26,145 nucleotides of DNA from Leidyana gryllorum EB-2025a (GCA_048772705.1 JBLWGC010000107.1:1-26145), one strand, 5' to 3'; shown: positions 4,501-26,145, counted from the first letter of the stretch. Notes: a model not told the origin generated them from the sequence alone. A program made the numbers and translations.

Positions 4501-4664
4501 ATTAGCATAGTGAACCAATTGTATCAATATTACGAGTGATTGCTTGTGAGTAAGATGTAGGACGACAATGGAATGCGTTAATGCGGGGGAGGAGAGAAGA
4601 ATTGAAAGTAAAGTTGTAAGCTTAGTGGAACAGAATGAAAGTAGTATATGGCTTACGAACTACT

Positions 4665-4913: not shown

Positions 4914-6452
4914 CCCGAGTTTCAGGTCGGGTCGGAAGGCTGCGGTGAGGTCAGACCATTGCCCTAATAATTCGGGCGTCCAGTCGATATTTTTGCTCGA
5001 TTTTTTGTGTGTGCGTGTCAGTGCGTGGAGGTCGTTGGTAAGTTGGGCGAAGTTGGGTACGAACCGGGCGTAGTATGTCATTGCTCCTAGGTGTTTCTGG
5101 AGGTCGTGGACGGTGTGAGGTGGTCGGAGTTTGCGGAAGCAGTCCAGTCGTTGAGGTTCGGGTTTGAGGCCGTTGTGTGTGAGTGAGTGGCCGATGAATT
5201 CGACTTCTTTGATACAGAAGTGGGATTTGCGTGGGTGGATGTATAGTTGGTGTTCCTGGAGTGCCGAGAGGACTTTGTCGATGTGTTCCCGGTGCGTTTG
5301 TATATCTGTGCTATAGATCAAGATGTCGTCGATGTAGGCGAAGACGAAGTGGCCGATATAGGGCTTGAGTATCTCGGTAATGAATGCGACGAATGCGCTT
5401 GGTGCGTTTTTCAGTCCGAAGGGCATTACGTTGTATTCGTACTTCCCTAGTGGTGTTTGGAAGGCTGTGAAATGTCGTGATCCTTCTTCAATGAGTATCT
5501 GGTGGAAGCCTGACTGGAGGTCCAGTTTTGTGAAGACTGTGGCTCCCCGCATCTTAATGAGCATTTCTTCGATCCGCGGGAGTGGGTACGCGTAAAATTC
5601 CGTTCGGGCGTTGAGTCGTCGGTAGTTGACCACTAGTCGGGGTACTGGGGTGTCTTTCTTTGGTACTAGAAAGCAAGGTGAGCCCCACGCCGACTTGGAT
5701 GGTCGTATCATTCCTTTGGTGAGTAGATCCTCGATTTGTCGTTCTATCTCTTCGGAATCCGCTGATTTCAGGCTATATGGTTTGGCGCTGAACGGTTCCG
5801 CGGGTGTTGTTTTAATTTGGAAGTCGTGGAAACCTCTCGGTGGCGGGAGTCTTTGCGGCGTGGTGAAGAGCGTGGAGTATTTGTCAACGATCCATCCTTC
5901 CTCTGGCGGGATCTTGATGCATTGTTGGTCTGGTTTGGGGTCTTGTTGAGTGGTACTGAGCATGCACTGTGCCGGGATAATGTGGTTCTCAACCACTACT
6001 GGCTGTCCGTGGGTGTTGGTGCCGACGGCGAGTCCTGCTTGGGCAAAGCTCGGTAGCCCGATCACTGCGTCTAATCCATTAAGGTTGATGACGTGTAGTG
6101 TTAGATTTAGTGCCTTTCTTCCCGTTGTGAGTATCGTGGCTTGGACTGTACCCGCTGAAGTTGTGCTTCCTACTCCTGTTATCTTTATCGCTTCGTGCTG
6201 GTCTGGTTGGAGTTGGAGCCTTCTGGCTATGTGTTCTCCCAGCAGGTTGATCTCTGCTCCGCTGTCGGCTAATGTCAGGATGGGAGTGAGCTTGTGGTCG
6301 TTCTGAATGTGCCACCTAACTATTGCTCGTCGTTCTCTTCCATTCGTGTTGTTCCATAGCCACGCACTTGCTGTGGCTGTTGTCATTTCTCCCTTCGACT
6401 CGGGGCCTATTGTGCGGGTCGGGAGCGTTTCCGCGGCCTCTAGCGAAAATCC
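4914..6452 (-). pseudogene. pol: Element B pol 5' half: aspartic protease and reverse transcriptase, truncated at the inversion breakpoint
   Basis: LADSGAEIN; SAWGSPCFLVPKK, VVNYRRLN, TKLDLQSGFHQI, MPFGLKNAP, AYIDDILIYS. Confidence 0.95.
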
Positions 6453-7592: not shown

Positions 7593-7827
7593 TGTAAGTC
7601 TGGGGTTCTTCTGGGGCCGGTGCCTTGGCAGTTCTCTTAGCCTTCAAGGCAAATGATCTGGGAAGTATACTGGGCCAGTTGGTTCGTCTGGTCATGGTAA
7701 ATCCAGTTAACTAGTTGCGTGCGTGTGCTGTGTTTGTACCCACCGTGTCTCCGGCCGGGCGGTTAGTTACGTCATGCATATTAAAAAGGGTGGTTTCACA
7801 AGCTATCTGAGAGGTGTAATCCTTACA
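7593..7827 (-). repeat. 3' LTR of element C (235 bp)
   Basis: Direct repeat of 17224-17458 with about 2 substitutions; PPT GAGGGGAGGAG adjacent. Confidence 0.95.
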
Positions 7828-8816
7828 CTCCTCCCCTCGCCATTAGATCTTGACCTGATAGTTCTTCGTCTGTGAAAGGTACCCCCCGTTTCGTTCGATT
7901 CCACTCTTCTCTGTATGCAATGATGAGATCTAGCGCATCGGCGTCAAGTACGTTGTGGGCCGGTTCCCATGTGGCCTGCTCGTGTGGGTAATCTGTCCAC
8001 TTTATGAGGAATCGTAGTCCATGTCGGTCGTTGCTCTGAGCCAGTACCTTCTCCATTTGGAATATCTCCCCTGCTTCCTCTTCTTCGCCGCCAGTGTATT
8101 TCTTGAGTCTGGATATATGGAACTTATTCAGGCCCTGCCAGGCTTGTGGCATCGCTAGCTCGTATACGTCGGTCTCTAATACTCGTTTCACTCTGACTGG
8201 TCCCATGTACGCTTTCGTTAGTTTGTGTCGGGGTCCTCTCTTAAGTCCCTGGGTCCTGAGAAGGACTAGTTCTCCGACCTCGAACGATTCGTTGGCCCTG
8301 TGGCGGTCGTACGCGAGCTTCTGTTTGGACTGAGCCTGTCGGATGCGGTCCTGCATTATGCTGATCGACTGTGAGTGTAGCGTGAGTTCCGCGGTGGGCC
8401 CGGGGTCAAGTCCGAGATTGAGAGGGATCTTGGGGATGTATCCTCTCTCCGCTTCGAAAGGACTTATACCTGTTGACGCATTTGGCATTGCGTTGTACGC
8501 AAATTCGATGGCGGCTAGTCGAGTGGTCCATCTGGGGCCCACGTCCTCGCACACACAACGAAGCATTTGGATGACAGTTCGGTGTCCCCTTTCCAGTAGC
8601 CCGTTAGTTTGAGGGTGTGCTGCAGTAGTGGCTTTCAGAGTGATCGCGGCTGATTCGCAAAGTTGCTTCCACAGCTCGTTGAGCCACCGCGAGTCCCTGT
8701 CACGTACTATGACCGATGGGAATCCGTGTTCCCTAACGACTCTATTCATGAGTATGTTGGCGCAGTCTTTCGCCGTTGCGGTGATATAGCACGGCTCTAG
8801 GAGTAGTCTCCGCGTC
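7823..8816 (-). pseudogene. pol: Element C pol 3' segment: integrase core, GPY/F-like region, chromodomain
   Basis: In-frame continuation IIDRL|TRRLLLEPC; RDRDSRW, HPQTNGLLER, RFLIKWTDYPHEQATWEP; ends RGGV* in the LTR. Confidence 0.93.
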
Positions 8817-8944
8817 AGTCTTGTTGTGCTCCAGTGTGCAGCTTAGACGTGCGTGTACGACGCTGTGGGGCCTCCTGGGGGCTCCCCCACCCGTCCTCCA
8901 TCCTCGACCTGCCCTCACCCGTCACCTGGGGGTCTTGGCACAGT

Positions 8945-9016
8945 TGTCCGAGGTGGGATTCGATCCGCCGACCTGCGGGTCCCAAGTCCGAGTAGTTACC
9001 ACTGCACTACTGGATC
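8945..9016 (-). ncRNA. Degenerate tRNA-like unit 2 in G1 (Pol III type-2 promoter)
   Basis: A box TAGTGCAGTGG and B box GGATCGAATCC at tRNA spacing; acceptor stem imperfect. Confidence 0.65.
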
Positions 9017-9068
9017 ACAATACTAAGGGCAGCCATGTGCCGGTCGAGGTGGCTAGCCAAGGGCGAAG

Positions 9069-9141
9069 TGCAGGGCCGTGGATTCGATCCTGCGACCTCC
9101 AGGTTGCGAGCACAAGACACTTCCCATTGCACTAACTGGTA
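9069..9141 (-). ncRNA. Degenerate tRNA-like unit 1 in G1 (initiator-Met-like)
   Basis: A box TAGTGCAATGG; B box GGATCGAATCC. Confidence 0.65.
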
Positions 9142-9151
9142 CACCACAACA

Positions 9152-9364
9152 TGTAGTGTTGCTCTAATGGTCTGTCTACGGTTCGTCCTGATCTAAGTTC
9201 GGTCGGCATGCACAGTTCTGATCACTAAAAGGTAAGCCGGTTCAAAAGGGTAAGTCTATCTGTGTGTGTCCGTGTCTCCGTGCCGGCTGCCGGCCGGCCC
9301 CCCCGGAGACACAGACATGTTGTCCCCAGACTAGCTGCGGCTAGATGGGTACTGAAGCGCTACA
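9152..9364 (-). repeat. 3' LTR of element D (213 bp)
   Basis: Direct repeat of 13829-14041; TG...CA. Confidence 0.95.
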
Positions 9365-9374
9365 TCCCTCCCTC

Positions 9375-12300
9375 CTAAATATCTGTATATGGGTTGTGGG
9401 GGTGTCTCTCGTTCCATTCTGCCTTGAACGCCTGCACCAAATCCATTGCTGCTGCATCGATGATGGTGTCCAGGGGTTCCCAGGTGGCTTCTTGGTCTGT
9501 ATATCCCGCCCACTTAACCTTATATTCCGGTAGCCCTTCTTGGTTGATACGTTCGCCTAAAATCTTTTCCATCAGGTAAATGTCGGTGGGTTGGTTCGTC
9601 TGTCTGTCTGATCTATCCGAGTGCTGTTGGGGTGTTGCAGTGTTCTGATGATGCGGTTGCTTGAAGTGTTCCAGTCGTGAGGCGTGGAATTTGGGAAAAA
9701 TCTTCCAGGCGTCTGGTAGATCTAGTGTATATGTGTCGGTGTCGGTGGCTTCTACGATCGTAAAAGGGTCCACAATAGGGTAAAGCCAATTTGTTGTTCG
9801 GCACATGGATCAAGTTCTTCGTCTTCAGCAGTACTCGATCTCCAACCTTGAATGTGGTCTCTGCTCTACCTTGATCAGCTCCCAACTTCTGTCTGTCTGC
9901 TGCGGCGGACAATCGGTCCTTAGCTTCTTGTAGCTTCTGCAGGTATAATCTGAATGGTGTTGAACATGCTTTGATTGACGAGAGGTTGTCTTGTAGGAAT
10001 TGTGATCGCCCCGTGTCCAGTTCAAATGGGGTTGCATTCGTTGATGATTGTGTCGACGTGTTGTACGCGATCTCTACCGTATTGATGTGAGTACACCAAT
10101 TGGTTCCTAGTCCTCTCAGGGCGCATCTCAACATCTGTAGGATGGTCCTGTTTGCACGTTCTGTCAGACCGTTCGCTTGTGGGTGTGCCGCTGTTGTCAT
10201 TGCCAGATTAATGCTCAGATCTTTCATCAAGTGGTTCCAAAGGCCTGCCGTGAATCGAGGGTCGCGGTCGCTGATAATTTTGCGCGGTACCCCATGGATC
10301 TTGACAATGTTCTCTAGGAACAGTTTCGCGGCTTCTTCCGAGGTGATAGTTTTTTGACAGGGGATCATCCGGATCCGTCTCGTCATTCGGTCTATGACGA
10401 CCATTAAATAATCCAATCCTGTATTCCCATCTCTGGGTAGTTCCAAGAAGTCGATTCCTATCGATTCCCATGGGCTCGTTGGGTTGCAAATTGGATGGAG
10501 CAAGCCGTACGGTCTATGGCTTCGCTTTTTTGCCTTCTGGCACGTTGTACATCGGCGGCAGTATTCCGTGACGTCTGCCGTCAGACCTCTCCAGTTGAAT
10601 ATACTGCGGATTCTTGCTGTGGTTCGAGCGGGTCCCAGGTGGCCCGCCAGTTTTGAGTCGTGATTCTCCTTGATAATCTTTTCTATGAGGCATTGTTCCG
10701 CCGGAACTTCAATTGATCCGTCTGGTGTCACTGGTATTCCTTCTTGCCATTCGACTTCTCCACAAGTCCCTGCGTTCTCTTCGTTTCCTCTCCACGCAGT
10801 TCTCAACTCCTCTTCAATTGTGGGTCTGTCAATTTGGTCCTGTTCCAATTCCGTTTGTGTTGTCATAAACACACTTCCTTGCTTCCTCTCCTCGTCTTTT
10901 GTTTTCTGTGCCCGTGGCCGACTGAGTAAATCTGCAATGATGTTTTGAGTCCCTTCCAAATACTGTATCTCCAGCTGGAGTTCTCCCAGCGTCTGAAGCC
11001 ATCGGCTTTGCCTGTCGGATATCTGGGATTGCTTCAATAAGTGGGTCAACGGTTTGTGGTCGGTCCTCACAAGGATCTCCCGACCAATCAGCAAGTGTCG
11101 CCACTGTCTGCAAGCATAAACAATCGCCAGTAGCTCCCGTTAATGGGTTGGATATCTGCTTTCCGCTGGTGTGAGTACGCGAGACATGAATTCGATCGGT
11201 TTAATCCCTTCTGCCAAGGAGTACTCGTCCAATACAGCTCCTATGGCCTCCAAACTGGCGTCGGTGGTCAGCACCAAACTTGTGCAGCCTTTCGATGGAT
11301 ATCCCAGCACTGGGCACTTACACAATCCGTCCTTGAGCTCATCCATCGCTTGTTTCACCTCATCCGAGGCGGCTATCTTGTCATTTGGTCTTTTCAGTCC
11401 TTTCATTGCATCATATAGCGGTTTCGCTTTGCTCGCAAAGTTCTGGATGAATCTCCGATAAAAATTGAACATGCCTAAGACACTTTGCGTCTCCTTCAAT
11501 GTGGACGGTGTTGCCAACTGCTTCAGTGCCATCATTTTCTCTTCTACTGGATGAATCCCATTGCGGTCCAGTCTGTGCCCTAAGTATATCACCTTGTCCT
11601 TGAAGAAGTGGGATTTCCGCCTGTGGATAACGAGTTGATTGTTCATTAGTCGTGTTAGGACTTCCCTCAAATGTCGACGATGCTCTTCCCATGTCCTTGA
11701 GTAGATCAGAACATCATCTAGGTAGACAAAGACGTACTCGCCTATGATGTCCCTGAATATGGTGTACATTAATAACATGAATGTAGATGGGGCATTCATA
11801 AGGCCATTCGGCATCACCACCCATTCAAATAGTCCCCACGGGGTCGCGAATGCCGTCAGTGGGGCTGATTTTGGGTCCATTCGTACCTGATGGTACCCAC
11901 TTTTGAGGTCCAGAGTCGAGAATATAGTAGCTCCTTCCAGTTGGGAGAGCGCTTCGTCGATGGGTGGCATCGGGGACACTATCCGGACCGTTTCTTGATT
12001 TAATCGGCGGTAATCGCATACCAATCGAGGAATTTTGGTGTCTTTTTTTGGTACAAATAAGCAGGGTGATGACCATTGGGATGTGCTGGGTTGTATCTTC
12101 CCTTCCTTCAACAAGGTGAGTATTTGTTCCTTCAGCTCTCCGGCATAGTGCTGTGGTATTTTGTAAGGCTGCCTGGCAAATGGCGTCACGTGTTGTCCTT
12201 TGAGTTGTATGCTGTGGTCAATTCCTTTGCGGTACGGTGGTAAGGTTCCCTGGTCTTCGAATGCCATGTAGAAACATCGCTCAATCCAGTCTTCCTCGTC

Positions 12301-12846
12301 CGGTCGGTCCAAAGATGTGGTAATAATGGCATCCTTTTCGCCTCGTATGTTGTACACCGCTCCGCTAATGTGTGGTCTGAGCCATTCTGTAGGTTTCATG
12401 TTGGTATCAATGGGCAGCACTAATTCCTCTAGGACACACCAACGTTGATTCCGGTCGGTCCCTATCCAAAGCCCCAATCGTTGTATCACCGTTGTGGAGA
12501 TTATTAAGTCGTAAGGTAAATTGTCCAGTATCACGCACGAGATCTTAAGTTCCTGTCCTTTGGTGGTTTTGATGACCGCTTGTGTTGTTCCCCGGGTCTT
12601 CGTGGGTTCCGCTGATACTCCTCTGATCCGCATTGTGTCCTCTCCCACCGTTCCTCCTATTCTATTCACCACGTCCCGTGAGATGCAGTTGGTGTCGCTC
12701 CCTGTGTCAATTAGAACGCAGCAGGGTAAGATTGTCTCCTTCCCTGGTGCTCGGATCGTCCACGTTGTTTGGAGGGGTGGTTCGGGTCCTATAGCTGGGC
12801 ATCCGGAGTGAGTTCCCCTGACTCTTCCTGCCCAATCTGAAAATCC
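9375..12846 (-). pseudogene. pol: Element D pol (PR-RT-RH-IN-chromo) with a nonsense codon at 11140-11142 and a +1 frameshift near 9763
   Basis: LIDTGS, YLDD, LTTDAS, H*RELLAI (TAA at the conserved Glu), IGIDF, ISDRD, QANGLTER; GPF|TIVE frameshift in a T-run; EYKVKWAGYTDQEATWEP. Confidence 0.93.
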
Positions 12847-13886
12847 GACCCCTCCAAGGCGTGTACCCTCCCTTCTCTGCGGTCTGTGCGTTTTTGGCAT
12901 TGAGCCATCAAATGTCCTCGCTCCCCGCATGATCTGCATCTTCCTTCGGCCATACACTGGGCGTATGTGTACTTGCATTGCGGCCCCACTGATCCCCGTT
13001 GGTACCCTCTGGTTCCTTGCGTCGCCAGTACTCGCCCTTCCGCTCTGCGTAGATCTCTCCTTTCTGTCACTGTTGCATAAAGTAGCGCTCGTTCGCATAT
13101 GTTTTCGAATGTGGTTCCTATGCAGGTGGCTAAAGCCAGCTGGTCTTTCTCCGGCAAGCCCTGGAAAAATAGATTGATAGCAGAATTTTCCGACATCATC
13201 GGCAGTCCTCGCTTCAACTCCCTGCATTCCAACACGTAAGCTTGCATGTCCTGTCCTTTCCGCAGTTGGGTCCACTTTATTAGGTCGTCTTCGGCCTTAT
13301 TCCGAGCCCCGAATTCTCGGAGGAAGCTCTGTCGGAAGTTAGACCATGATCCTTGGACCAGATCATCGGCCTTTGCCAGATACCACCTCGCTGGCCCCCC
13401 GTCCATCCCCGAACATGTGGCTCTGATCATTTCTTCCTCCTCCGTTACCCCAAAGCCTTTGAATCGGGCTTCACAGCCATCGAGCCAGTCCCTCGCATCC
13501 GTGGTCTTGTTGGCTGTGAACAGCGGCTGTCGTTTCAGTGCCTGCTGGGCTGCTTCGGATATGCCTCGGTGAGTGTTAAACGGTTTCTTTGTTTGTTTCC
13601 CTATTTCAGTTGGGCGGTTAGTCCCTGGGTTCTTAGTGATCTGTTCTTCCATAGTTTCCATCCGAAGCGCTAATCTTTCAATCACTGTCGTAAGTTTCTC
13701 CACATCTGTCCTGAGTCGTTCCTCTGTGCTGGTCTGTTCTGTAGCCTCTGTCTGAGGTTCGTTTGTCGCGTGCATCGTATCCTGTAATTCGCTCATAGGT
13801 CCGTCCTCTGGCTGCGCACTGCTACCAGTGTAGTGTTGCTCTAATGGTCTGTCTACGGTTCGTCCTGATCTAAGTTCGGTCGGCAT
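12789..13886 (-). CDS. gag: Element D Gag with CCHC zinc knuckle
   Basis: Open 365-aa ORF; MPTELRSG start inside the LTR; GPARWY..SWSNFRQSFLREF; CRSCGERGHLMAQC. Confidence 0.92.
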   Translation of the reverse strand: MPTELRSGRTVDRPLEQHYTGSSAQPEDGPMSELQDTMHATNEPQTEATEQTSTEERLRTDVEKLTTVIERLALRMETMEEQITKNPGTNRPTEIGKQTKKPFNTHRGISEAAQQALKRQPLFTANKTTDARDWLDGCEARFKGFGVTEEEEMIRATCSGMDGGPARWYLAKADDLVQGSWSNFRQSFLREFGARNKAEDDLIKWTQLRKGQDMQAYVLECRELKRGLPMMSENSAINLFFQGLPEKDQLALATCIGTTFENICERALLYATVTERRDLRRAEGRVLATQGTRGYQRGSVGPQCKYTYAQCMAEGRCRSCGERGHLMAQCQKRTDRREGRVHALEGSDFQIGQEESGELTPDAQL

Positions 13887-14041
13887 GCACAGTTCTGATC
13901 ACTAAAAGGTAAGCCGGTTCAAAAGGGTAAGTCTATCTGTGTGTGTCCGTGTCTCCGTGCCGGCTACCGGCCGGCCCCCCCGGAGACACAGACATGTTGT
14001 CCCCAGACTAGCTGCGGCTAGATGGGTACTGAAGCGCTACA
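13829..14041 (-). repeat. 5' LTR of element D (213 bp), contains the gag ATG
   Basis: Followed by C + TGGTAGCAGTGCG PBS. Confidence 0.95.
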
Positions 14042-14046
14042 CAACA

Positions 14047-16418
14047 AGTCTGTCAATTATACTCATCACGCAATCGGGAGCTCCGTTCGTTTCCGGTGGA
14101 AGCTTCAGTAGATCAATCGATAGTTCCTGCCACGGAAGCTCTGGTGGGGCAATCGGGTTCAACAGTCCAAGGGGTTTAGATGTGCTCGTTTTTGACCTCT
14201 GGCATATCGGGCACGCTCTGCAGTATTGTCGAACGTCTTCGGTCACCCCCGGCCAGTTGAATTGTCCTCTGACTTTCAGAAGGGTCCTGTCGTGTGCTAG
14301 GTGGCCGGCGATGATGGAGCCATGGGATTCTCTGATGACGAGACGTCTCAGGTCTGCTTGATTAGGTATAAATAGTCGGCCAAATTCATCGTGAATCCAC
14401 TCTCCGTTTCGTTCAAAACCTTCGGGCGGTGTTTCCACCTGCCTCAGTGCCTCCTTAAGTTGCTTGGTGAAGTCTATTTCAGCTGAAAAGGTGGCGAGTA
14501 CTTCTGTCTTGGGTTGAATGGCTCCGGCGCCGCTGAGTAAGTCCGCCAGGACATTGTCCTTTCCTGGGATGTGGTCTATGGTGGCTGGGTACTGGGAGAT
14601 TTTGATCAGCCACCGTATGACCTTCGGGCTGAGAACTGTGCTCGTCTTCTGCAGTACCACCAAGGGTTTGTGGTCTGTGTGGATGTAAAAGTCGCGGCTC
14701 ATCAGGTAGTGCCTCCAACGCTTTAGCGCTGCCAGGATGGCCCACAACTCTCTCTCGTGAACCGCCCAGTTTGTCTGTGTTGGCGTGAGCCTGCAACTGA
14801 AATGCTCGATGATGCGTTTGGAGTCACCTCCATCCGTCCATTGTTCAAGTGTGCCCCCAACTGCAGTGTTGCTAGCGTCTGTGGTGACATGAAAAGGTAG
14901 TTCATCGTCTACCACCCGGAGGGTTAGGTCTGTTCCGAAGGCATCCGTCAGACGGTTCCAAGCCTCTTCTTTTTCCGTGGTCCATAAAATTTTGTCCGAC
15001 GGTTTTTTGAGTTGGTTGATGATCTCGTGGAACGGTATGGTTAGTTCCGCAAACTTCTGGATGTATTTCGCGTAGTAAGTCATTCCCCCAATTGCTCGTC
15101 TCAGTTCTCCCATTGTTGCATGCGGTTTCAGACGTTTGAACGCGTTCTGCCTCTCTGGGTTGGGTCTGATGCCGTGGTGATCAAGATGCTGTCCGATGAA
15201 GTCTACCTCGGTGAGGAAAAAGCTGGATTTCTTCGGGTGCACTTTGAGTTTATGTTCTTCTAATTTCTGCAGGATCGCTCGGAGATGTACGCGGTGTTGA
15301 GCTACAGATGGGCTATACACAAGTATGTCGTCAACATACGCGATGGCGCATCTCCCCAGCCACGGCTGGAGGATCTCCTCGATGAACGCCACAAAGGCCG
15401 GGGGAGCATTCCTCAGTCCGAAGGGGAGTACCCGCCATTCAAATTTGCCCACAGGTGAGGAGAAGGCTGTCAAATGATAGCATTGTTCACGTAGGAGTAT
15501 CTGGTGGTACCCAGACTGAAGATCCAGTTTGGAGAATATGCGCGCTTTCCTCAGTTCGGGGGCGGCCAGATCGGCACGAGGAATTGGGTAGGCGTAAGTG
15601 ATTGTTGCGTCATTCAATTTCTTGTAGTTGATCACAAGTCGGGGTGTCGGCGTGTCCTTCTTGGGGACCAGGAAGCACGGGGCACCCCATTCCGACTTGG
15701 ACCTCTGGATTTTCCCTTGAGCTTCTAGTTCCGCTAGTTGTCTCGTCATTTCCTGTTTGTTTTGTTCGGAACTTGCGTATGGTCGGTCGAATGATGGTAT
15801 GGTTCCGGGTTTCAGTTGTATGTCAAAGTCATGGAAGCCCCTTGATGGGGGGAGTGCTATATTTGGCTTGAAGAGCCCTCCGAAATCTGATAAGATCCAT
15901 TCTTCCTCTATCGGGGTTTTGAGTGTCACTGCTGTTGCCATGTGTATCTGGCCAGGGATTGAGTCCCGGCCTTGCTTCTGAATGGAGGCTTGTTCCAAGA
16001 TAGTGAGTTTCCCTTTGGAGTCTGTCCCTATGGCAAGTTGTAATCCCATGATTGTTTCTATCCCAAGAATGGCATCGTACGGTGTGATGTCCGCTACTAC
16101 GAAGCAAAGGTCGAAGGTTTGGTGAGCTTGTGTGAGCAGTGTGGCTGTCACTGTACCCTGACTCTGCTGTTGTCCGATGCCGTGCAGCGTGAGCGTGTTG
16201 TTCTTGTCGGGCTCCAATTTGAGGTATGACGCCATGTCTGGGCTCAAAATATTCACTTCGGCGCCTGTGTCCACAAGGCATAAGGCCGTGGTTTGGCCCT
16301 GCGGGCTTCTTATCTGCCACGTGACCGCTGCTCTAGATTGTGTTCCTATCCTGAATAGGTCAGCTACCGTTTGGAGCCCCACATCTGGGTGAGCAGGTGG
16401 GGCTCTTTTCAAAAATCC
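14047..16418 (-). pseudogene. pol: Element C pol 5' segment: PR, RT, RNase H, integrase N-terminus, interrupted by insertion
   Basis: LVDTGAEVN, YVDD, VTTDAS, HERELWAI, H..GH..CRACPICQ, LSIDL; breaks at SIIDRL. Confidence 0.95.
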
Positions 16419-17326
16419 TGGTCCGCGTTCGTTGGTCCTTCTTCCTCGTCCACGGTGATGGGGTAAGAGCGTTTGGGTGTGGCCAGAGCCGGTCGTTGGT
16501 TTCGTGATCGTTTGGGGCAGTTCGGGGCCAGGTGTCCTTTCTCGCCACAGGTATAACACAAGCCGTTCTTCTGGCAGTGTTCCCTGCAGTGTGGGTTGTT
16601 GTAGCCCACTCCTTTCGGCCGGGCAACAAGCACCCTGGGGTTGTTGCCTATTGCTCTGGTGTGTTCCCGCTCTAACTCGGCTATGAATTCCAGGGCTTCC
16701 TCGATGGTCTGAGGGCGTCGTGTCATCATCAGTGCTTTTTCTTGTGGTGGTAAGGCCCGTTTGATTATGTGCAGGATTTCGCTTGGTTCCATAGTGAAGA
16801 GTCCGCGGCGCAGCTCCCGTACCCGGCGTACAAAGCCCATGAGATCTTGGGGGTCAGCTCTGAGGTCTATTAGTTCTTCTAGGTCTGTTCTGGTCGCTGT
16901 TCCGAATTCCTTGAGGAATCGCGAGCGGAAATCGGTCCACAGGAGGTCCCGGATGTCTTCCGCACTGGCTACTGCGTTCAGCCACCTTGCTGCCGAGTCT
17001 TTCAGTGTTCCGCAGGCGATGCGGGTCCGTTCTTGTGCTCGTACCATCAAGGTGTCAAAGGCAGCCTCTAGGTTGTCCAGGTGGGAGCGTGGGTCTTGCG
17101 CGCCTGTGAAGGAGCTGGTAAGTTGCGTAACCATTTTGATATTGCGGACAATTGAACTCTGGTTGGCCGGCATCGGTTCGATCGTCGATCTTTCGTCGTC
17201 TAATGGGTAGTCACTGCTACCAGTGTAAGTCTGGGGTTCTTCTGGGGCCGGTGCCTTGGCAGTTCTCTTAGCCTTCAAGGCAAATGATCTGGGAAGTATA
17301 CTGGGCCGGTTGGTTCGTCTGGTCAT
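16409..17326 (-). CDS. gag: Element C Gag with CCHC zinc knuckle
   Basis: Open 305-aa ORF homologous by eye to B and E Gag; CYTCGEKGHLAPNC; ATG inside the LTR. Confidence 0.92.
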   Translation of the reverse strand: MTRRTNRPSILPRSFALKAKRTAKAPAPEEPQTYTGSSDYPLDDERSTIEPMPANQSSIVRNIKMVTQLTSSFTGAQDPRSHLDNLEAAFDTLMVRAQERTRIACGTLKDSAARWLNAVASAEDIRDLLWTDFRSRFLKEFGTATRTDLEELIDLRADPQDLMGFVRRVRELRRGLFTMEPSEILHIIKRALPPQEKALMMTRRPQTIEEALEFIAELEREHTRAIGNNPRVLVARPKGVGYNNPHCREHCQKNGLCYTCGEKGHLAPNCPKRSRNQRPALATPKRSYPITVDEEEGPTNADQDF

Positions 17327-17458
17327 GGTAAATCCAGTTAACTAGTTGCGTGCGTGTGCTGTGTTTGTACCCACCGTGTCTCCGGCCGGGCGGTTAGTTA
17401 CGCCATGCATATTAAAAAGGGTGGTTTCACAAGCTATCTGAGAGGTGTAATCCTTACA
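17224..17458 (-). repeat. 5' LTR of element C (235 bp)
   Basis: Pair of 7593-7827; followed by C + TGGTAGCAGTG. Confidence 0.95.
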
Positions 17459-18725
17459 CTTCTGGCATCTCACGATCTTCCACACCTGACACAGGAACCC
17501 CAAGAGGCCACACGCCGTTCCCCCCTGCAACATCTTCCAGCTGCAACGTCGGTTGAATCAGGGTTGATTCAATCGATGATTCATGATCAACAACGACATC
17601 AGGTTCTTTCATCACCATTCGTTCCAACCGGTTTGCCATACTCATCATCATTTTCTTCATCTGCTCTATTTCCCCCTTTAAGTCCCCATCCGCCGCCTCG
17701 ATTCTCGGTCCTTCCTCTCGCTTACTTGCTACGGAAGGTCCAAGACCAACTTCCCCCACCCCCTTTATAGTCCTCGCACGCTTCGCAACTTGACGACCCA
17801 GCTCTGACTCCCTGATATTGATTTCTCGCAACCGGTCATTCATCTCCGCTCTCCGTCTCGCAACCCTCTTCTCTTCTTCCTCAGCCATCCGAACTAGCTC
17901 TTCCGTGTCACGATCCGTCATCGGTTCGAGCACAGGCCGTCGATCCAAGCCCATCCTGATGGCTAACTGCTTTCTCCGGAACTCCAAGATCCTCACGTGA
18001 ATGAACACCCAATGGTTGCGCAATCCAGCGAGATCATTCAACTCGAATTTCCTCACACTCGTGCGCGGCTTGAACACATCATTCACGTTCATGCACAGTG
18101 CTTGGAAATCGATTTGAGTGCCAACTATCACTGGCCCTTGGAAGTACTGGCACGAAGAGATTAAGTACCAAGCACTCAAGTTAACTCGCCCCCTCACTCC
18201 ATCGAACACTTCAGCTGCTTCCGCCACCTCCTCCAGAGCTCGCTCCAAGGTGTTGTAGTGACGATACCTACAACCATCACGCAACTTAGACTTCACATCA
18301 TCTGCCTGATCGAAGAATAAGTGCTTCCTCACGTCTGAGAACCACGAGATCACAACAGGAGCAACAAACTCAGGTGGGCGACCAACGTAAATCGTGTCTT
18401 GCAACACCTTATTAATCATTTCCTGCATGTGTTGCTTCTTCTCACTCGTCACCACGGCGCTATCCTCTCGGCGCTCCTCCACTCCACTCTCGCGACTGGC
18501 TAGTTGCATCAACATGTCGCTCGCGTTCCCTCTTCCAGTTTGACGACGACGTTGCTCCATCAGCCGTTCCAACGCAAGGTAACCCACCGGAATATCCGAA
18601 CTTGATGTGTTCTTTTCCATCTCAACAAGCTTCTGTGTAACAGTGGATGATTTGAGTGCAACAATCAATATTTGACAAAAAAGCTGTCCTTCAATCCACA
18701 GTGTTCTGTCTAATGTCGTGTTCAT
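17459..18725 (-). CDS. Orphan backbone protein with C-terminal coiled-coil and acidic tail, cut by element C
   Basis: 423-codon ORF whose stop is supplied by the LTR (G|TG TAA); no family recognised; start codon uncertain. Confidence 0.65.
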
Positions 18726-18762
18726 CCCATTCTTTACCCAATTTTGACTACTGTTCCTTCAA

Positions 18763-19614
18763 ATGAATCGGCTACTCCAAGATGAAACTTTCGAAGAGTT
18801 ACAACGCATTTGGAGAGTTCAATCATTGCTCATCCAACCACCAACACTTCAAGACCAAGCTCATGCGTGGACCACAATCCGACAAGCAAGAAATACCTTA
18901 CTTCAATCATGGGTCACTGCTGGCATCCTTGAATCAGTCGATTTTCCACTTCATTTCGGCTCTTTCAAGTTGTTCGCGTGTAGTTATTGCGGTTCACGAT
19001 GTTCTATGGACGAGTTGACACCCATTCAATGGACCAACCTGCCCGATTCTATCAGAATTCGTCTCGATCCCACACCCACGTTCATGATACTACATAGACT
19101 TCGGCCGCATTTCCCCTATCAACTACCAGAGTCAATCGACCAAATACTCCCACTCATTGCCCAGCTTCTCGTCATCTGTCACACTTGCTCTGACTATAGC
19201 CAACCTATCATCCGGTGTGCAAGCAACGTAATCAATCCACTACCCAACCTCTTCCTTCTCAATTTATCTATGATTGAGAAACGAGCGATCGCCCTTGCAC
19301 AACCTTGCGTGTGGCTGAAGCATTACTCAGGGATTCACTCAACTATAGCCGTATACCACAAGTATACTGATCTATACGCCTTCTCCGAGCTCATTCCACT
19401 GGCTGAACGCTCCCAAGTCATACCAGCGAAGTTTTACTTCAATACACACAGTTTCCACCCCCACTTCTATGGAAAACTCAACAGTAGAAACATCATCCAC
19501 GCGTTCAACCTACTATCGCTCCGAGATTCCCGCTACGGGACCTCCCACATACAACAGGATCTTCCCGACAACCCCCGCAACCCTTTTCCCCAGGAAGGAG
19601 GGGGAGGAGTGTAG
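18763..19614 (+). CDS. Cys-rich protein resembling the N-terminal region of Helitron RepHel proteins, fused to the element F PPT/LTR
   Basis: CSYC...CHTC, N..NPLP..L.NLSMIEKRAIA..QP, IIHAFNLL..RDSRY. The resemblance to DUF6570-like regions is from memory only. Confidence 0.4.
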   Translation: MNRLLQDETFEELQRIWRVQSLLIQPPTLQDQAHAWTTIRQARNTLLQSWVTAGILESVDFPLHFGSFKLFACSYCGSRCSMDELTPIQWTNLPDSIRIRLDPTPTFMILHRLRPHFPYQLPESIDQILPLIAQLLVICHTCSDYSQPIIRCASNVINPLPNLFLLNLSMIEKRAIALAQPCVWLKHYSGIHSTIAVYHKYTDLYAFSELIPLAERSQVIPAKFYFNTHSFHPHFYGKLNSRNIIHAFNLLSLRDSRYGTSHIQQDLPDNPRNPFPQEGGGGV

Positions 19615-19797
19615 TAGTGACAACGTCTCTGTGTCTCCGGTGCCGGCCGGCCCAGTCACGGAGACACAGAGACACGCAGATAGACACACGTGTGCAGATT
19701 GTTTTTTGTTGCTTGACGACTAACGGAACACTTACGATGGATCTAAGAAACAGAAGCCTAGTGGCACCCTCGGCGCAGCAGAGTAGGCCAGATTACA
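19592..19797 (+). mobile_element. Element F remnant: PPT (19592-19609) plus 188-bp 3' LTR (19610-19797) of a fifth Gypsy family
   Basis: AGGAAGGAGGGGGAGGAG|TGTAGT...GATTACA. Contains the hairpin motif shared with the D LTR and a gag-type start MDLRNRS...PDYT. Confidence 0.85.
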
Positions 19798-19918
19798 CCG
19801 GCCAGAGCCGGTCCGCCATTTGTCTGTGTCTCGGTGCCCGGCCGGCACCGGCACGAGACGGAGACGGGATCAGACAGACACGCGTGTGCTTACGTTTTTG
19901 AGTTACTTGACAACGGAG

Positions 19919-20889
19919 ATGAACGATCAACCAGGATTAGTCCTACGAAATGGAAAGCAGATTAGCCTAGTAGATCCAGCTACAGACTTACCCCCACCGG
20001 GTTATACTGGTAGCAGTGCGTGTCAACCAGCACTGGGCGAGGAACCAGAAACGGCAACGGATTTGGACGAAGGCGCCAGGCCGCAGAACACTCACAAGCA
20101 AACCGACCTGGCTAATGAACCACTGGAGCCGACGGACACAGCCTTACGTCTGATGGGATGGATTCGCACGACCGTTCAGGTGGCGGGATCCTATGATGGC
20201 AATTCAGAACCACTTGTTCACCTCGACACACTCGAGAACTGTTTCAGGAACGCAGGCCTCCCAGTCAGGCATTGGACAGCGGTGGCCTGTGGGACCTTCA
20301 GAGGGGGAGCGTCGTCGTGGGCGAACGCGGTCAACATGGACATTCGCCATATGGAGTGGGCAGCGTTCCGCAGAATGGTAACAACCGAATTCGAATCGGA
20401 CAAGCGAGGCAGCCTCGCACGACTTGTGGCCCTACGACCGGAGGAGGCAGGGATCCGTCAGTTTGCCTTAGCATTTCGACAAGAGCGGCGCATGATTCGC
20501 AACATTCCGGAGGCGGACATGGTGGATTTGTTCCTATCAAGACTCCCAAAAGCAGAACAGCTCGCGATACGAGGCAGAAACCCGCAATCGGTGGCCGAGG
20601 CTGTATCGCTGACGCTGGTGCTCTGCCCACAGGGAGCGATGGACACCAGGACAGTATTGGTTGCGACCCGCCGGCGCGTGGGGTCCAGAACCCTCACACT
20701 CGAGAACATTGCAGCAAGCATTAGTTGTGCTACATCTGCGGACAAGGGGGACACCTATCCAACAAGTGCCCAAAACGCGGAAACTCAGGGCGACCTACAC
20801 ACCCACAGCGCAAAGCTTTCCCAGCCAGACCCGACATCTCGGTGGAGGCGGCGATAGAGGAAGAAGCGGAAGTGGATTCGGATTTTTAG
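19919..20889 (+). pseudogene. gag: Element E gag with a 1-nt deletion near 20684 and TAG at 20722-20724
   Basis: MNDQPGLVLRNG start in the LTR; capsid-like region. The alternative frame gives QNPHTREHCSKH*LCYICGQGGHLSNKC...VDSDF*. Confidence 0.88.
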
Positions 20890-23800
20890 ATCAGGCCCTC
20901 GGTGGGCCTGACGCATGCTTCACAGCCACAGACTGGCGCGGCGCTCAGCGCGCAGGATGGACAGCCACAATGGAGTGGGAGATGACCAGCACAAAGGGAG
21001 GGCACGTTAGACGAACAACAGCGCTGATCGACTCTGGATCAGAATTAAACATTATGACACCGAATCTAGCAAAGAGCTTGGAACTGGAACTGCGGCCATC
21101 CGAGACTCACCGAATAGACGGGATGGGCTCCGCAAGATGCGAAGGGGAAGTGGAGGCGTGCGTGAAGACAAAATTCGGCACTTACGGACCGACTCGCTTC
21201 GCGGTGGTGCACAATGACCACTACGAAGCCATCATAGGGTTACCACTGATACACAGCATACCGCTGGTCCTCGGAACCGACGGTAACGGACGGATGGTGA
21301 TCGCGGAGGGCTCTATCCTTGAAAGCGAGACAACCTTTATAACAAAGCCAATACAACTGACCTTACCGGAGCCAAAACCTGAAATAAACGGACCGAATGG
21401 GTGGATACTCGAACGATTTGGACAGCTCTTCCGAAACAAACTCCCATTCCCACCGGACCGGGCCTTCCATAATTTTCAAATCAAAGTCTTACCAAACGCG
21501 AAACCATATGCGGGACGGCCGTACAGTGGAAAGGGAGACACTCAGGAACTCCGCAGGCAGGTAGAAGAATTGCTGGCCGAGGGTAAGGTCGTCAAGTCCA
21601 AATCGGAATGGTCAGCGCCATGCTTTCTCGTGCCAAAGGCCGACACAGCGGTACCTCGCATGGTTACCAATTACAAAGCGTTAAATGACCAAACCGTGAA
21701 CTACGCCTACCCTAGCACAACGACCGAAGAGAACTTGTCCGTTCTGCGAGGAGCGAAGGTGTTCTCGAAGATCGATTTGAAATCAGGGTTTCATCAGATA
21801 AGGATTGAACCGGAGTCGCAACAGTTCACGGCGTTCGTCACACCGTTCGGTAAGTACCAGTACACGGTTATGCCGTTTGGGTTGAAGAATGCTCCTTGTG
21901 CCTTCATTGCGCTCATGACGGAGGTCTTGGACGGACTGATCGGAGACTGCGTGGTTGCTTATGTGGACGATCTATTGGTGTACAGTGCGACATGGGAAGA
22001 GCACAAGACGCACCTAGAGAGAGTCTTCCAGAGACTAGGCGAGCATCAGCTATATATCAACCCCAGCAAGTCGAAGTTCTACCTGACGGAAGTGGAGTTT
22101 ACGGGACACAGAGTGACACCAGAAGGCATTCGGCCAGCAAAGACGAAAGTGGACTTCTTTCGCGCCAGACCACCCCCAGAAACGATCAAAGAATTATCAA
22201 CCCTGGTTGGAGCGATGAGCTACTATTCGCGATTCATCCCGCTGTTCGCACAGAAGGTTCGCACCTTCCACGGAATTATAGCAGCAAGTGATAAGCCGAG
22301 GGCGACGATCGAGTGGACGGAGGAGCGGAAACAAGCGTGGCGGGAGCTTACGGCGTGTTTCAACGACGAGAGACAACTAGGGCACATGGACCGCAGACTA
22401 CCACTCGTAGTCACAACGGATGCGTCCAATGAAGCGATAGGCGCCACACTGGAACAGAATCAGCCAGAGGGACGAGTACCCCTCGAGTTCATGAGTTGCC
22501 GACTCACAGCGGCACAGAAGGCCTGGCCTGTGCACGAAAGAGAGCTGTACGCGATTGAGTGCGCACTCAAACGCTGGAAACATTACTTGATCATGAAACC
22601 TTTCTCCGTTTTCACGGACCATAAGCCGTTGGCGACCCTGGCAAAGGCTAAGAATGTGTCGGACCGCGTGGTGAGAACCTTGCTCAAGATCTCTCAGTTC
22701 CCGTGTCGGATTGACTATATAAAGGGAACTGAAAATCATCTAGCGGACCTGCTCAGCAGGCCTCCACAGCGATTGTGCCACATGGCACAGTACCAGACGC
22801 ACGAAGGCGAATTCATGCTACTGCTACAACGGTTAAGCGGACCACTTCAGCCAGTCGGGGACCAGATCAAGCACCAAGGACTGGTGTACGATAGCGAAGA
22901 CCGAATAATAGTGCCGGACAACCGAGAAGTGAAGCTGCGAATACTGGAAGAATGCCACAGCTCACTGCTAGGGGGACACATGGGAGCGGATCGCACCTTG
23001 AGAAGGGTGACTGCCATGTTCTTCTGGCCTCACGTGGCCCGTGATGTGCGGGAATACTGCCGCTCGTGTGACACATGTCAGCGAGTCAAAGCGACGAACC
23101 AAAAACAGGTCGGACTACTACACCCGATACCACCACCCAGCGGACCGTGGTTAGAGGTCAGCTTGGACCTGGTATGCCTACCAGAAGATAGGAGTCGGGG
23201 CTCAGACAGCCTGATGACGATAATCGACCGATTTTCTCGACGAATGATACTGATCCCCTGCCGAAGAGATATCTCGGCCACAGAATCGGCCCAACTCCTC
23301 ATAGAATACCTCATCAGGCCTCACGGGTGTCCGGAATCGATCATTTGTGATAGAGACTCTCGCTGGTGCTCAGACGTGTGGACAGAAATGTTGAAGATCA
23401 TGGGAACCAAACTAAGACCTAGCACCGCCTTCCATCCCCAAACAAACGGCATGGTCGAAAGGGGGCATCGAACGGCATTGCAAGTACTCAGAACGGTTTG
23501 TACCGAGATGGGAGACAATTGGGCGCAACTAATCCCAACGGTTGAGATGGCGATCAATTCAGCATTGAACGAATCCATTGGAATGTCTCCGCACGAGGCC
23601 GACACGGGAGTACCATTCAGGACCCCTCTAGCAGCAGCCATACCTAGCAATCCGGACAGAGCCCGAAAACCCCTCCAGCTGGAAGCGGAACGCTTACAAG
23701 AGATAACGGATCGAATTCGAGCAGCACAGAACAAGCAGAAGACGGCGGCGGATGCGAATCGGAGGAACGAATGTCACCAGGAAGGCGACTATGTACTATT

Positions 23801-24242
23801 GCCCGCAAAGCAGCTCAAAGGACTACGCAGAACGAAACTATCCCACAACTACATCGGGCCCTTCAGGATAAACGCCTGCATTCCAGGAGACGTCTACCAA
23901 CTTGAATTGCCCAGTAGCTTGCAAGTGCATAATAGATTCCATGTGAGTCGCCTAAGGCGCTATAACGGGCCGTCACCGGAGAACCCACAACCGGTTTACC
24001 AAATGGAAGCAGTCAAGGGCGAGAAACTCAGACAGGGCACCTACCTGTGGCTGATAAAATGGAGAGGTTACCCGGACTCGGAGAACACCTGGGAACCGTT
24101 GTCCGTAATCCGAGAAGGCGACGCGGTGGACCTCGTACTGGACTTTAGGAGGGAGTATAATGCGAGACCGAGCACTAAGGTACCCTACACCGCGGAACAA
24201 CTCGAAGGACGAGACTTAGATCTCGGGCCGGGAGGAGTGTAA
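20880..24242 (+). CDS. pol: Element E Pol, intact: PR-RT-RNase H-integrase-chromodomain (expressed by -1 frameshift)
   Basis: LIDSGS, YVDD, VTTDAS, H..GH..CRSCDTCQ, VSLDL, ICDRD, QTNGMVER, GPFRI, LWLIKWRGYPDSENTWEP; ends PGGV* in the LTR. Confidence 0.96.
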   Translation, partial: GFLDQALGGPDACFTATDWRGAQRAGWTATMEWEMTSTKGGHVRRTTALIDSGSELNIMTPNLAKSLELELRPSETHRIDGMGSARCEGEVEACVKTKFGTYGPTRFAVVHNDHYEAIIGLPLIHSIPLVLGTDGNGRMVIAEGSILESETTFITKPIQLTLPEPKPEINGPNGWILERFGQLFRNKLPFPPDRAFHNFQIKVLPNAKPYAGRPYSGKGDTQELRRQVEELLAEGKVVKSKSEWSAPCFLVPKADTAVPRMVTNYKALNDQTVNYAYPSTTTEENLSVLRGAKVFSKIDLKSGFHQIRIEPESQQFTAFVTPFGKYQYTVMPFGLKNAPCAFIALMTEVLDGLIGDCVVAYVDDLLVYSATWEEHKTHLERVFQRLGEHQLYINPSKSKFYLTEVEFTGHRVTPEGIRPAKTKVDFFRARPPPETIKELSTLVGAMSYYSRFIPLFAQKVRTFHGIIAASDKPRATIEWTEERKQAWRELTACFNDERQLGHMDRRLPLVVTTDASNEAIGATLEQNQPEGRVPLEFMSCRLTAAQKAWPVHERELYAIECALKRWKHYLIMKPFSVFTDHKPLATLAKAKNVSDRVVRTLLKISQFPCRIDYIKGTENHLADLLSRPPQRLCHMAQYQTHEGEFMLLLQRLSGPLQPVGDQIKHQGLVYDSEDRIIVPDNREVKLRILEECHSSLLGGHMGADRTLRRVTAMFFWPHVARDVREYCRSCDTCQRVKATNQKQVGLLHPIPPPSGPWLEVSLDLVCLPEDRSRGSDSLMTIIDRFSRRMILIPCRRDISATESAQLLIEYLIRPHGCPESIICDRDSRWCSDVWTEMLKIMGTKLRPSTAFHPQTNGMVERGHRTALQVLRTVCTEMGDNWAQLIPTVEMAINSALNESIGMSPHEADTGVPFRTPLAAAIPSNPDRARKPLQLEAERLQEITDRIRAAQNKQKTAADANRRNECHQEGDYVLLPAKQLKGLRRTKLSHNYIGPFRINACIPGDVYQLELPSSLQVHNRFHVSRLRRYNGPSPENPQPVYQMEAVKGEKLRQGTYLWLIKWRGYPDSENTWEPLSVIREGDAVDLVLDFRREYNARPSTKVPYTAEQLEGRDLDLGPGGV

Positions 24243-24473
24243 GGGGTTACACAATTATCAGCGGCCGGCCAGAGCCGGTCCGCCATTTGTCTGTGTCTCG
24301 GTGCCCGGCCGGCACCGGCACGAGACGGAGACGGGATCAGACAGACACGCGTGTGCTTACGTTTTTGAGTTACTTGACAACGGAGATGAACGATCAACCA
24401 GGATTAGTCCTACGAAATGGAAAGCAGATTAGCCTAGTAGATCCAGCTACAGACTTACCCCCACCGGGTTATA
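24238..24473 (+). repeat. 3' LTR of element E (~236 bp)
   Basis: Starts TGTAAG after the PPT; appears identical to 19798-20006 over the shared part. Confidence 0.92.
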
Positions 24474-24494
24474 CAAGTCGTTTGTGTTGTGGTG

Positions 24495-24567
24495 TACCAG
24501 TTAGTGCAATGGGAAGTGTCTTGTGCTCGCAACCTGGAGGTCGCAGGATCGAATCCACGGCCCTGCA
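24495..24567 (+). ncRNA. Degenerate tRNA-like unit 1 (initiator-Met-like)
   Basis: A box 24502-24512, B box 24546-24556. GGAAGTGT..GCTCGCAACCTGGAGGTCG..GGATCGAA parallels eukaryotic tRNAi-Met, including the ATCG T-loop. Confidence 0.65.
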
Positions 24568-24619
24568 CTTCGCCCTTGGCTAGCCACCTCGACCGGCACA
24601 TGGCTGCCCTTAGTATTGT

Positions 24620-24691
24620 GATCCAGTAGTGCAGTGGTAACTACTCGGACTTGGGACCCGCAGGTCGGCGGATCGAATCCCACCTCGGACA
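24620..24691 (+). ncRNA. Degenerate tRNA-like unit 2
   Basis: A box 24627-24637, B box 24670-24680; AGGTC variable loop; TGG at the anticodon position. Confidence 0.65.
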
Positions 24692-24834
24692 ACTGTGCCA
24701 AGACCCCCAGGTGACGGGTGAGGGCAGGTCGAGGATGGAGGACGGGTGGGGGAGCCCCCAGGAGGCCCCACAGCGTCGTACACGCACGTCTAAGCTGCAC
24801 ACTGGTCTGCAGTGCCACGACATGTTCGGCGACT

Positions 24835-24907
24835 GCGCCAATAGCACAATGGTAATGACTACGGACTTATGTTCTGAAGGTCGGTGGTTCGAGTCTCCCC
24901 GCGGACA
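24835..24907 (+). ncRNA. Degenerate tRNA-like unit 3 (paralogue of unit 2)
   Basis: A box TAGCACAATGG 24842-24852, B box GGTTCGAGTCT 24886-24896; shares CGGACTT, AGGTCGG and the CGGACAA end with unit 2. Confidence 0.6.
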
Positions 24908-25054
24908 AGCCTGACTCCACGGCATTGTCAACGGGACTGGCTGCTTAAGGTAAGTCTTATCCATACGTGTGCAGGTGAAGGCTGTACACGCGCGCGCCAA
25001 GACATTTGAGCCTTAGCTGTAGCACATAGGTAGCGTTAGGTCCAACTTAGATGC

Positions 25055-25059
25055 TTTTT
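25055..25059 (+). terminator. Candidate Pol III terminator (T5) in G2
   Basis: First run of 4 or more T on the sense strand downstream of the three tRNA-like units. Confidence 0.45.
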
Positions 25060-25122
25060 AGAAAAGGAAAAAAGGGGGAACGAACTCGACAGTCGGCACT
25101 CACCCTGGAGCACAACAGTTTG

Positions 25123-25388
25123 AACTCGTACATATCGTTCCAGCGCAATTGCACGCAAGATTGATGCAATTGGTCCGTTCTACTTATCACATTCACGATA
25201 GGTTGCTAACTATTCCATCAATAAATAAATCTCACAGAAACAATGGGTACGGGGAAGCGCCCGAGCGAAGCGACAAGGGCGCTCCACACACCCCATCAAT
25301 ACTTCTTCACGCACACTATTACTCAACGTACATATCAGCCTTAACATCCCGCTCGTACACTAACAATCCGAATACCCATAACTCTTAG
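25123..25388 (+). pseudogene. Possible 3' end of a backbone ORF (helicase-tail-like)
   Basis: With G2 removed, the frame is open from the E junction: KSFELVHIVPAQLHARLMQLVRSTY...; weak support. Confidence 0.25.
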
Positions 25389-26145
25389 CATATATACACT
25401 CTCTCAATGTTTTATAGCAAACAACTGACCACCACCCTCTTACCACACCTCGAACTACATCACAATTGTCAATATACTCCTATTAACCTACCTATCATTA
25501 GCCAAATTCATGTCGCCCGAATCAACACTCAAATCCTATGCATAACTTGACTCCATCCGCATATTCTTACAAATTCCCATTCACTCCAATAAATAATGTC
25601 CACGATACGCATTGGACTCATGACATTCTTCTCAACACTCTCAATTCAACTTGAATCTCATTGATTCCCCTATATCTAGCATTACAAGCTTTTATACGTC
25701 TACAAATACTCCCTCAATCAACGAGCGAATCGCTAACTCACTCTAGACCCCTCACAGCCTAACAGACAAACCATCTAAACCAATATCACTCACACATAAC
25801 CTTCCAAGTTGCTCCACATTCACTTTAGCAAACTGAGCATACTACACATCACAGCACAGTTACCAAAATACACGCCATACACTCATACAATCATGCATCT
25901 CCAGCTCATATAGTCTCACAAATCAATACATAACAAGCACGATACCTGTCAACATACTAAGCAACACAACTACATCGTCACAGTCTTTTATTAGCACAAT
26001 ACACACCACATCAGACCTTACTTGCGCACGCTACAGCAACCGCAACGTGTAGAGAATTGAAAGCTAAACATTCGCAAACACGCAAACACAGTACAATTCA
26101 GCGATAAACAAGCACATAAACCACATAATCCAAAAGCAAACAGCA

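Follow-up and report, generated by a model that had tools for sequence, protein, structure and literature searches.

The upstream edge of a Gypsy long terminal repeat is a landing site for other chromoviruses in Leidyana gryllorum

The nest and the repeat G

The window described here, a 26,145-nt stretch of the genome of Leidyana gryllorum EB-2025a (JBLWGC010000107.1:1-26145) analysed at its full length, is a nest of Gypsy chromoviruses (Table 1). Elements D, E and F carry coding domains recognized by Pfam, element X is represented by a 3' long terminal repeat (LTR), and a repeat designated G is present twice (G1 and G2). E and G2 lie in a copy of a host repeat, H. The subject of this report is the upstream edge of G, which is a landing hot spot for three Gypsy families.

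Table 1. Features of the nest, with positions counted from the first nucleotide of the window (PBS, primer-binding site; PPT, polypurine tract)
Feature	Position	Strand	Remarks
F	7593-17463	-	Outer Gypsy chromovirus around G1 and D; Pfam domains on either side of the insert
F LTRs	about 7593-7827 and 17224-17458	-	Repeat pair, 237/240 identical
F PBS	17210-17222	-	
G1	8822-9151	-	Internally deleted solo LTR; G positions 1-321 plus the last 9 bp
D	9152-14041	-	Gypsy chromovirus; paired LTRs, TG..CA ends, Pfam domains, PBS match
D 3' LTR	9152-9364	-	213 bp
D PBS	13815-13827	-	Complementary to the initiator tRNA-Met of this genome
D 5' LTR	13829-14041	-	213 bp
D upstream target-site duplication	14042-14046	-	TGTTG; first 5 bp of G1, copied at D integration
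X 3' LTR	19610-19797	+	188 bp; PPT and LTR start at 19603-19614; both ends set by full-length LTRs on C201 and C26
E	19798-24473	+	Gypsy chromovirus; LTR pair, PBS, Pfam domains
E 5' LTR	19798-20006	+	LTR positions 28-236 only
E PBS	20008-20020	+	
E 3' LTR	24238-24473	+	Ends set by copies on C116 and C43
Spacer of H between E and G2	24474-24484	+	11 bp: CAAGT (presumed E duplication), C, GTTTG (G2 duplication)
G2	24485-25117	+	Full-length solo LTR; 633 bp, private 7-bp deletion, GTTTG flanks
G2 unit 1, A and B boxes	24502-24512, 24546-24557	+	
G2 unit 2, A and B boxes	24627-24637, 24670-24681	+	
G2 unit 3, A and B boxes	24842-24852, 24886-24896	+	
H	25118-26145	+	Host sequence of E and G2

D, E and F can be classified as chromoviruses on the basis of their domain order (protease, reverse transcriptase [RT], RNase H and integrase [IN]) and a C-terminal chromodomain, which is frame-shifted in D. 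The nearest pol clusters are fungal (Basidiomycota). D has Pfam matches to Gag, protease, RT, RNase H and IN, as well as paired LTRs (212/213 identical), a PBS, a PPT and a 5-bp target-site duplication. Its chromodomain (9365-9700, minus strand) is out of frame with the IN core and its pol match contains one in-frame TAA; this copy, young as judged by its LTRs, is probably non-autonomous. E has the domains protease, RT, RNase H, IN, SH3_Tf2-1 and chromodomain. Its LTRs, PBS and PPT are present, while its 5' end has been lost, such that its duplication pair is not comparable. Copies on contigs C116 and C43 show that the full-length E LTR is 236 bp with TG..TA ends, beginning with TGTAAGG and terminating with GGGTTATA; the two LTRs of E are identical over their shared stretch (209/209). 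G1 and D are located within the IN gene of F, and the F protein alignment is unbroken across this insert. The flanks of F (AGAAG and GAAGG) show a one-base offset.

G is the LTR of a retrotransposon. It measures 638 bp when complete and has inverted termini of 7 bp (TGTTGTG..CACAACA), and the whole genome contains 15 near-identical copies that represent 11 independent loci, the remainder being assembly or segmental duplicates. Nine of these 11 loci have perfect 5-bp target duplications. At two tRNA-array loci, removal of G together with one duplication restores intact tRNA-Gln(CTG) and tRNA-Pro(TGG) genes (predicted with ARAGORN). Downstream of one copy (L007 on C43), 2 nt precede a 16-nt PBS with perfect complementarity to tRNA-Ala (3' end plus CCA); the next feature is a gag-like open reading frame of 332 aa, which has gag-family neighbours and, at its C-terminus, a weak zinc knuckle. 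The assignment of G as an LTR follows from these termini, duplications, restored empty sites and the PBS and gag downstream of L007. Most G copies are thus solo LTRs, and one is a 5' LTR. As a separate observation, the solo LTRs at L008 (C71, at 33 kb) and at L012/L013 (C187 and C68) lie inside tRNA-Pro(TGG) and tRNA-Gln(CTG) genes, in the anticodon region in both cases.

A reading made earlier from the sequence alone had taken G to be 321 bp long and had raised the possibility that it is a mobile, dispersed landing pad. The dispersal is borne out by the 11 independent loci, at which G is 98-100% identical, but G is an LTR rather than an autonomous pad and its length required correction: every copy but G1 runs beyond 321 bp to a shared end. 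G1 is identical to G2 over the 321 bp, and comparison with the 14 other copies places its internal deletion between CTGG repeats. A tRNA-derived short interspersed element (SINE) can be ruled out as the identity of G. G resembles such elements in having dispersed tRNA-derived units with RNA polymerase III (Pol III) boxes, but it has inverted TG..CA termini, a duplication of constant 5-bp length and an associated PBS and gag; neither an A-rich or LINE-derived tail (the 3' end is CACAACA) nor a duplication of variable length was found in G.

L007 and a second C43 copy, L014, are 5.6 kb apart and co-oriented. The distance from gag to pol (4.5 kb) would fit a single unit, with 2.3 kb in the middle of the stretch (C43:175.5-177.8 kb) unseen; the two copies share 97% identity and have different flanks (GTTCC and GCTGT). 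A complete second LTR of approximately 380 bp is retained in this G-flanked element (C43:173686-179925), where it separates pol from the 3' G, and the PBS of the element matches tRNA-Ala, whereas all other families here use initiator tRNA-Met. The element is probably a chimera that combines two lineages. Relatives of its gag (31-36% identity) were found only on C122, C181, C13, C72 and C123; C181, C13 and C123 are also tRNA-array contigs, which hints that this gag lineage lives in tRNA arrays. Elsewhere on C43 (118-124 kb, L017-L020), G positions 55-123 occur reversed at 96% identity within a 212-bp LTR of another Gypsy family, and G positions 14-51 lie approximately 100 bp from this piece. 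LTRs in this genome seem to be mosaics that swap pieces. The scrambled L017-L020 region has no clean insertion junction and was excluded from the junction counts given below.

Within G are three decayed units of tRNA origin, each with A and B boxes that conform to the consensus. The units were recognized solely by alignment to the tRNAs of this genome, with scores 3.6 to 6 standard deviations (SD) above shuffled sequence. Unit 1 is closest to initiator tRNA-Met (approximately 6 SD) and unit 3 is closest to Trp/Arg types. The A54-type B box is shared with the real tRNA-Ala and initiator genes of this genome. No tRNA was called in the window or in G by ARAGORN or Rfam, and none of the units folds as a tRNA. 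Downstream of unit 1, about 550 nt pass before the first T-run. L016, an old G copy with 82% identity, has mutations in two B boxes, but it is decaying and is uninformative on box conservation.

Gypsy elements land at the upstream edge of G

TGTTG occurs on either side of D (14042-14046 and 9147-9151). Because the latter sequence is the first 5 bp of G1, and because a second duplication, AGACT (14047-14051 and 8817-8821), brackets D and G1 together, the order of events was insertion of G1 into F followed by insertion of D into G1. At the other pair, E and G2 are two integrations 6 bp apart in H: E ends 11 bp before G2, and the G2 duplication GTTTG recurs at 25118-25122. The E and G2 duplications do not overlap, so either order is possible. 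The two pairs are mutually inverted in the window, and in each of them the 3' LTR of the Gypsy element is directly upstream of G and co-directional with it.

A third junction is present outside the window. At L014 on C43, the LTR of another chromovirus ends in CA 10 bp before the G copy and in the same orientation. This LTR is approximately 380 bp, contains the hairpin motif of the clade and has further copies on C26 and C6; only an IN C-terminus and a chromodomain were detected in the C43 element. Measured from the nominal +1 of unit 1, the LTR end is 10-11 bp away for D, 21-22 bp for E and 20-21 bp for the third family. These results agree with what the sequence-only reading had reported for the window, namely that both G copies have a co-directional Gypsy element directly upstream, that the D duplication is taken from G1 (both duplications are perfect) and that E ends approximately 20 bp upstream of unit 1.

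A co-oriented Gypsy 3' LTR end is found at -11 to +5 of the first base of G at three of the 11 independent loci. All three are among the six G loci in transposon islands (3/6); the remaining five are in tRNA arrays. The LTR hairpin motif occurs within 1.5 kb of G at only three of the 15 copies, and in each case it is upstream and co-oriented. In the window, the density of LTR 3' ends is approximately 1 per 5 kb, half of them co-oriented (approximately 1 per 10 kb). With this density, approximately 0.01 junctions would be expected by chance among six G copies, versus three seen, and the probability of at least three is on the order of 1e-7. The upstream edge of G is therefore a real landing hot spot for three Gypsy families.

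The same numbers argue against two simpler explanations of these junctions: coincidence in a densely nested region, or a hot spot that belongs to H and not to G. Nesting is indeed dense, with one LTR end every 5 kb or so, and a D-family copy on C201 lies 22 bp downstream of the E/G2 site in a different copy of H. The number of junctions nevertheless far exceeds chance expectation, and neither G1 nor the C43 copy is in H. The empty E/G2 site (...CAAGT-C-GTTTG...) is continuous in 10 of 12 H loci, and of approximately 21 H copies with a left flank, 19 are intact at this site, one contains the D copy of C201 and the last is unresolved. Neither similarity to G nor an A or B box was found in H. H as a true hot spot is thus mostly rejected, and these two explanations taken together are highly improbable. 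Since nearly all other H copies are intact at this site and H is unlike G, the adjacency of E and G2 is better explained by one of the elements attracting the other.

Which of the two did the attracting can also be asked in reverse. The IN of the G element could prefer sites 1-6 bp downstream of the 3' LTR end of other elements, in which case G2 came after E and the C43 copy after the third family, with D/G1 as a separate case. The non-overlapping duplications of E and G2 would permit this order, and the presence of both elements in only the window's copy of H, out of approximately 22, fits either direction. D/G1 proves the opposite order once, however, and nine of the 11 G insertions are far from any LTR end (in tRNA arrays, in pol genes and inside tRNA genes). 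G2 also has two private changes while the E LTRs are identical, which weakly suggests that G2 is older. The reversed order would require two mechanisms, whereas landing of an incomer on the 5' edge of a resident LTR covers all cases with one. A preference of the G integrase is accordingly quite improbable.

H itself is present in at least 41 copies and consists of tandem subrepeats followed by inverted arms of approximately 1.1 kb. It resembles a foldback element (window 25118-26145; L055-L064), with approximately 1 kb of subrepeats of about 22 bp and arms around a centre of about 100 bp, and it is a frequent host of Gypsy insertions. An 11-bp tandem repeat forms long arrays elsewhere in the window (1399-2200 and 4629-4924), the second of which separates the 3' LTR of one element from the truncated end of its neighbour.

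tRNA-like units or LTR edges as the target

The position of these insertions suggests a candidate for what is recognized. If unit 1 still assembles TFIIIC and TFIIIB, tethered Gypsy integrases would insert upstream of the Pol III start, and restriction of insertion to heterochromatic islands by chromodomain tethering would explain why tRNA arrays are spared. The distances from LTR end to +1 (10-11, 20-21 and 21-22 bp) are comparable to the approximately 15 bp (13-18) of Ty3 and DGLT-A (PMC6101501), the A and B boxes are intact in all three units, whose alignment scores were given above, and three unrelated families converge on a single site. Insertion of an LTR close to a tRNA gene also happens in this genome. 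A different solo LTR (approximately 310 bp, TG..CA ends, TCCAT duplication) is found 24 bp upstream of tRNA-Ala(TGC) and tRNA-Ala(CGC) genes (L088:546-865 and L123:1-102). Empty paralogous sites of this LTR are present in L080 and L110, and the two occurrences represent either one duplicated event or two.

The distribution of Gypsy elements relative to real tRNA genes speaks against simple tRNA targeting. The sampled tRNA arrays hold 279 genes in 60 kb (60 array loci; 359 genes over all sampled loci), and no Gypsy LTR motif was found in these 60 array loci. RT and IN matches occur in about 30 transposon-island contigs that barely overlap the tRNA-array contigs. Among 3' flanks, one of three in the D family and one of two readable in the E family are beside a tRNA-like unit, and none is beside a real tRNA gene; this comparison covers five flanks in a genome with approximately 60 Gypsy copies. 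The other D- and E-family flanks are H, the coding region of another element or an unrelated repeat. The arrays (L065-L124) are themselves spread over many contigs, are very dense and two-stranded, and vary in anticodon within the same array slot. A T4 run in the 40 nt that follow the gene is present for only 28 of the 327 tRNA genes at all sampled loci.

Of the two kinds of target that the sequence-only reading had proposed to compare, the edge of G has D and E insertions, and the 60 sampled array loci of real tRNA genes have no Gypsy LTR motif. The adjacency that it had noted in two cases has proved non-random and extends to a third Gypsy family, with D later than G1; its interpretation through Pol III is partly supported.

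Several further observations speak against recruitment by Pol III factors. No insertion upstream of unit 2 or unit 3 was found among the junctions; if the units were equally attractive, the chance of all three hits falling at unit 1 would be approximately 0.04. No tRNA is called in G, and the first T-run is distant from unit 1. The other copies of the D and E families with readable flanks are away from tRNA-like sequence. Two further junctions, described next, involve no tRNA-like sequence at all. Targeting through Pol III factors assembled on unit 1 is accordingly unlikely. A more elaborate version, in which the U3 of G was built from a piece of tRNA array with an initiator-Met-like unit and two others and keeps working Pol III boxes, so that its spreading solo LTRs plant TFIIIC/TFIIIB sites in heterochromatic islands for Ty3-style landing of several chromoviruses, is rather doubtful.

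The first of these junctions is in the window. E lacks the first 27 bp of its 5' LTR, and the complete 3' LTR end of X meets E LTR position 28 head-to-tail and co-oriented. The E LTR has no tRNA-like part. It is strongly indicated that X entered the E LTR; the 5' side of X is deleted and leaves no duplication to compare. The second is on C215, where an E-like LTR ends 10 bp before the start of another LTR, and this resident LTR is likewise devoid of tRNA-like sequence. The locus (L035, C215:24420-26539) contains three co-oriented LTR-like units within 0.9 kb. The spacing from the start of the resident LTR is 10-11 bp in three junctions (E/G2, C43 and C215), while D is at +1 and X at +28. All five junctions are co-oriented.

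The proposed model, which we favour tentatively, is as follows. The 5' edge of a resident LTR may be a general integration hot spot in transposon islands, G being the LTR of a Gypsy chromovirus that is mostly present in solo form. An incoming element would land co-oriented, with insertion points that range from 10-11 bp ahead of the LTR, approximately one helical turn, to a few tens of bp within it, and something bound at or just inside the 5' end would position its integrase complex. Candidates are a DNA-binding protein of the host, comparable to Sap1 in the case of Tf1, and a nucleosome, positioned or excluded, that the chromodomain integrase reads. In G the bound component could be TFIIIC/TFIIIB on unit 1, although the data do not call for a tRNA-like part. 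G would be hit often because it is a recently amplified and abundant solo LTR. All of these elements have chromodomains, and their RT and IN matches are confined to the island contigs described above.

Several points weigh against this model. It draws on five junctions, with the order established by duplications for D and strongly indicated for X. The first 4 nt of the 10-bp spacer on C215 are those with which the usual PBS begins, a pattern to be expected if the incomer was the element downstream, and one that would also suit the G integrase preference considered above. Only about two of 15 readable 5' edges of LTRs other than G are occupied, versus three of the six island copies of G, and G may be special after all. 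The bound factor is still a candidate only.

Comparison with known targeting systems

Target-site choice determines where retrotransposons gather and how nests and islands grow. At the edge of G, three unrelated chromovirus families share the same few bp and one orientation, which represents targeting on a single-nucleotide scale in a protist that is as yet without a genetic system. Should integration be guided by a factor bound at LTR ends, nests would seed themselves and would not be passive dumps. If Pol III machinery on the tRNA-like units is responsible, tRNA-type targeting would be carried on a mobile element, and as a landing pad one retrotransposon would engineer the nesting sites of others. 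Under either reading, the G edge provides a short defined sequence for direct tests of targeting.

Ty3 of Saccharomyces cerevisiae and DGLT-A of Dictyostelium integrate approximately 15 bp upstream of tRNA genes via TFIIIB/TFIIIC, and 18 of 20 DGLT-A copies are at such sites (PMC6101501). The insertions at G are similar in that Gypsy-type elements recurrently use the same spot, 10-22 bp ahead of a unit that has A and B boxes. They differ in that the target is a decayed tRNA-like unit within the LTR of another element, none of the 279 sampled real tRNA genes is targeted, and approximately a third of D and E copies are at such sites. In addition, the D/E-type elements bear chromodomains, and contact with Pol III factors is putative here.

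Tandem elements can also arise without integrase. In integrase-independent insertion of Tf1, the primer tails of the cDNA anneal at resident copies (PMC11042837), and the head-to-tail arrangement beside a resident element is the same as that described here. D, in contrast, has a perfect 5-bp duplication, its flanks are unlike a PBS and it has no LTR in common with its neighbour. PBS-homology insertion is thus excluded for D, and insertions of the D type can be attributed to integrase.

A precedent for the proposed model is the insertion of Tf1 in Schizosaccharomyces pombe, which occurs at -9 and +19 beside a motif bound by Sap1, a DNA-binding protein with fork barrier activity (PMC5741268). 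Both systems involve chromoviruses with an SH3_Tf2-1 and chromodomain integrase, and in both the offset is short and nearly fixed (approximately 10-11 bp in three of the five junctions here). In L. gryllorum the site is not a Pol II promoter but an LTR 5' end within a transposon island, and a Sap1-like factor or motif is hypothetical. The orientation bias at these LTR edges is also complete, as the two LTRs point in the same direction at all five junctions.

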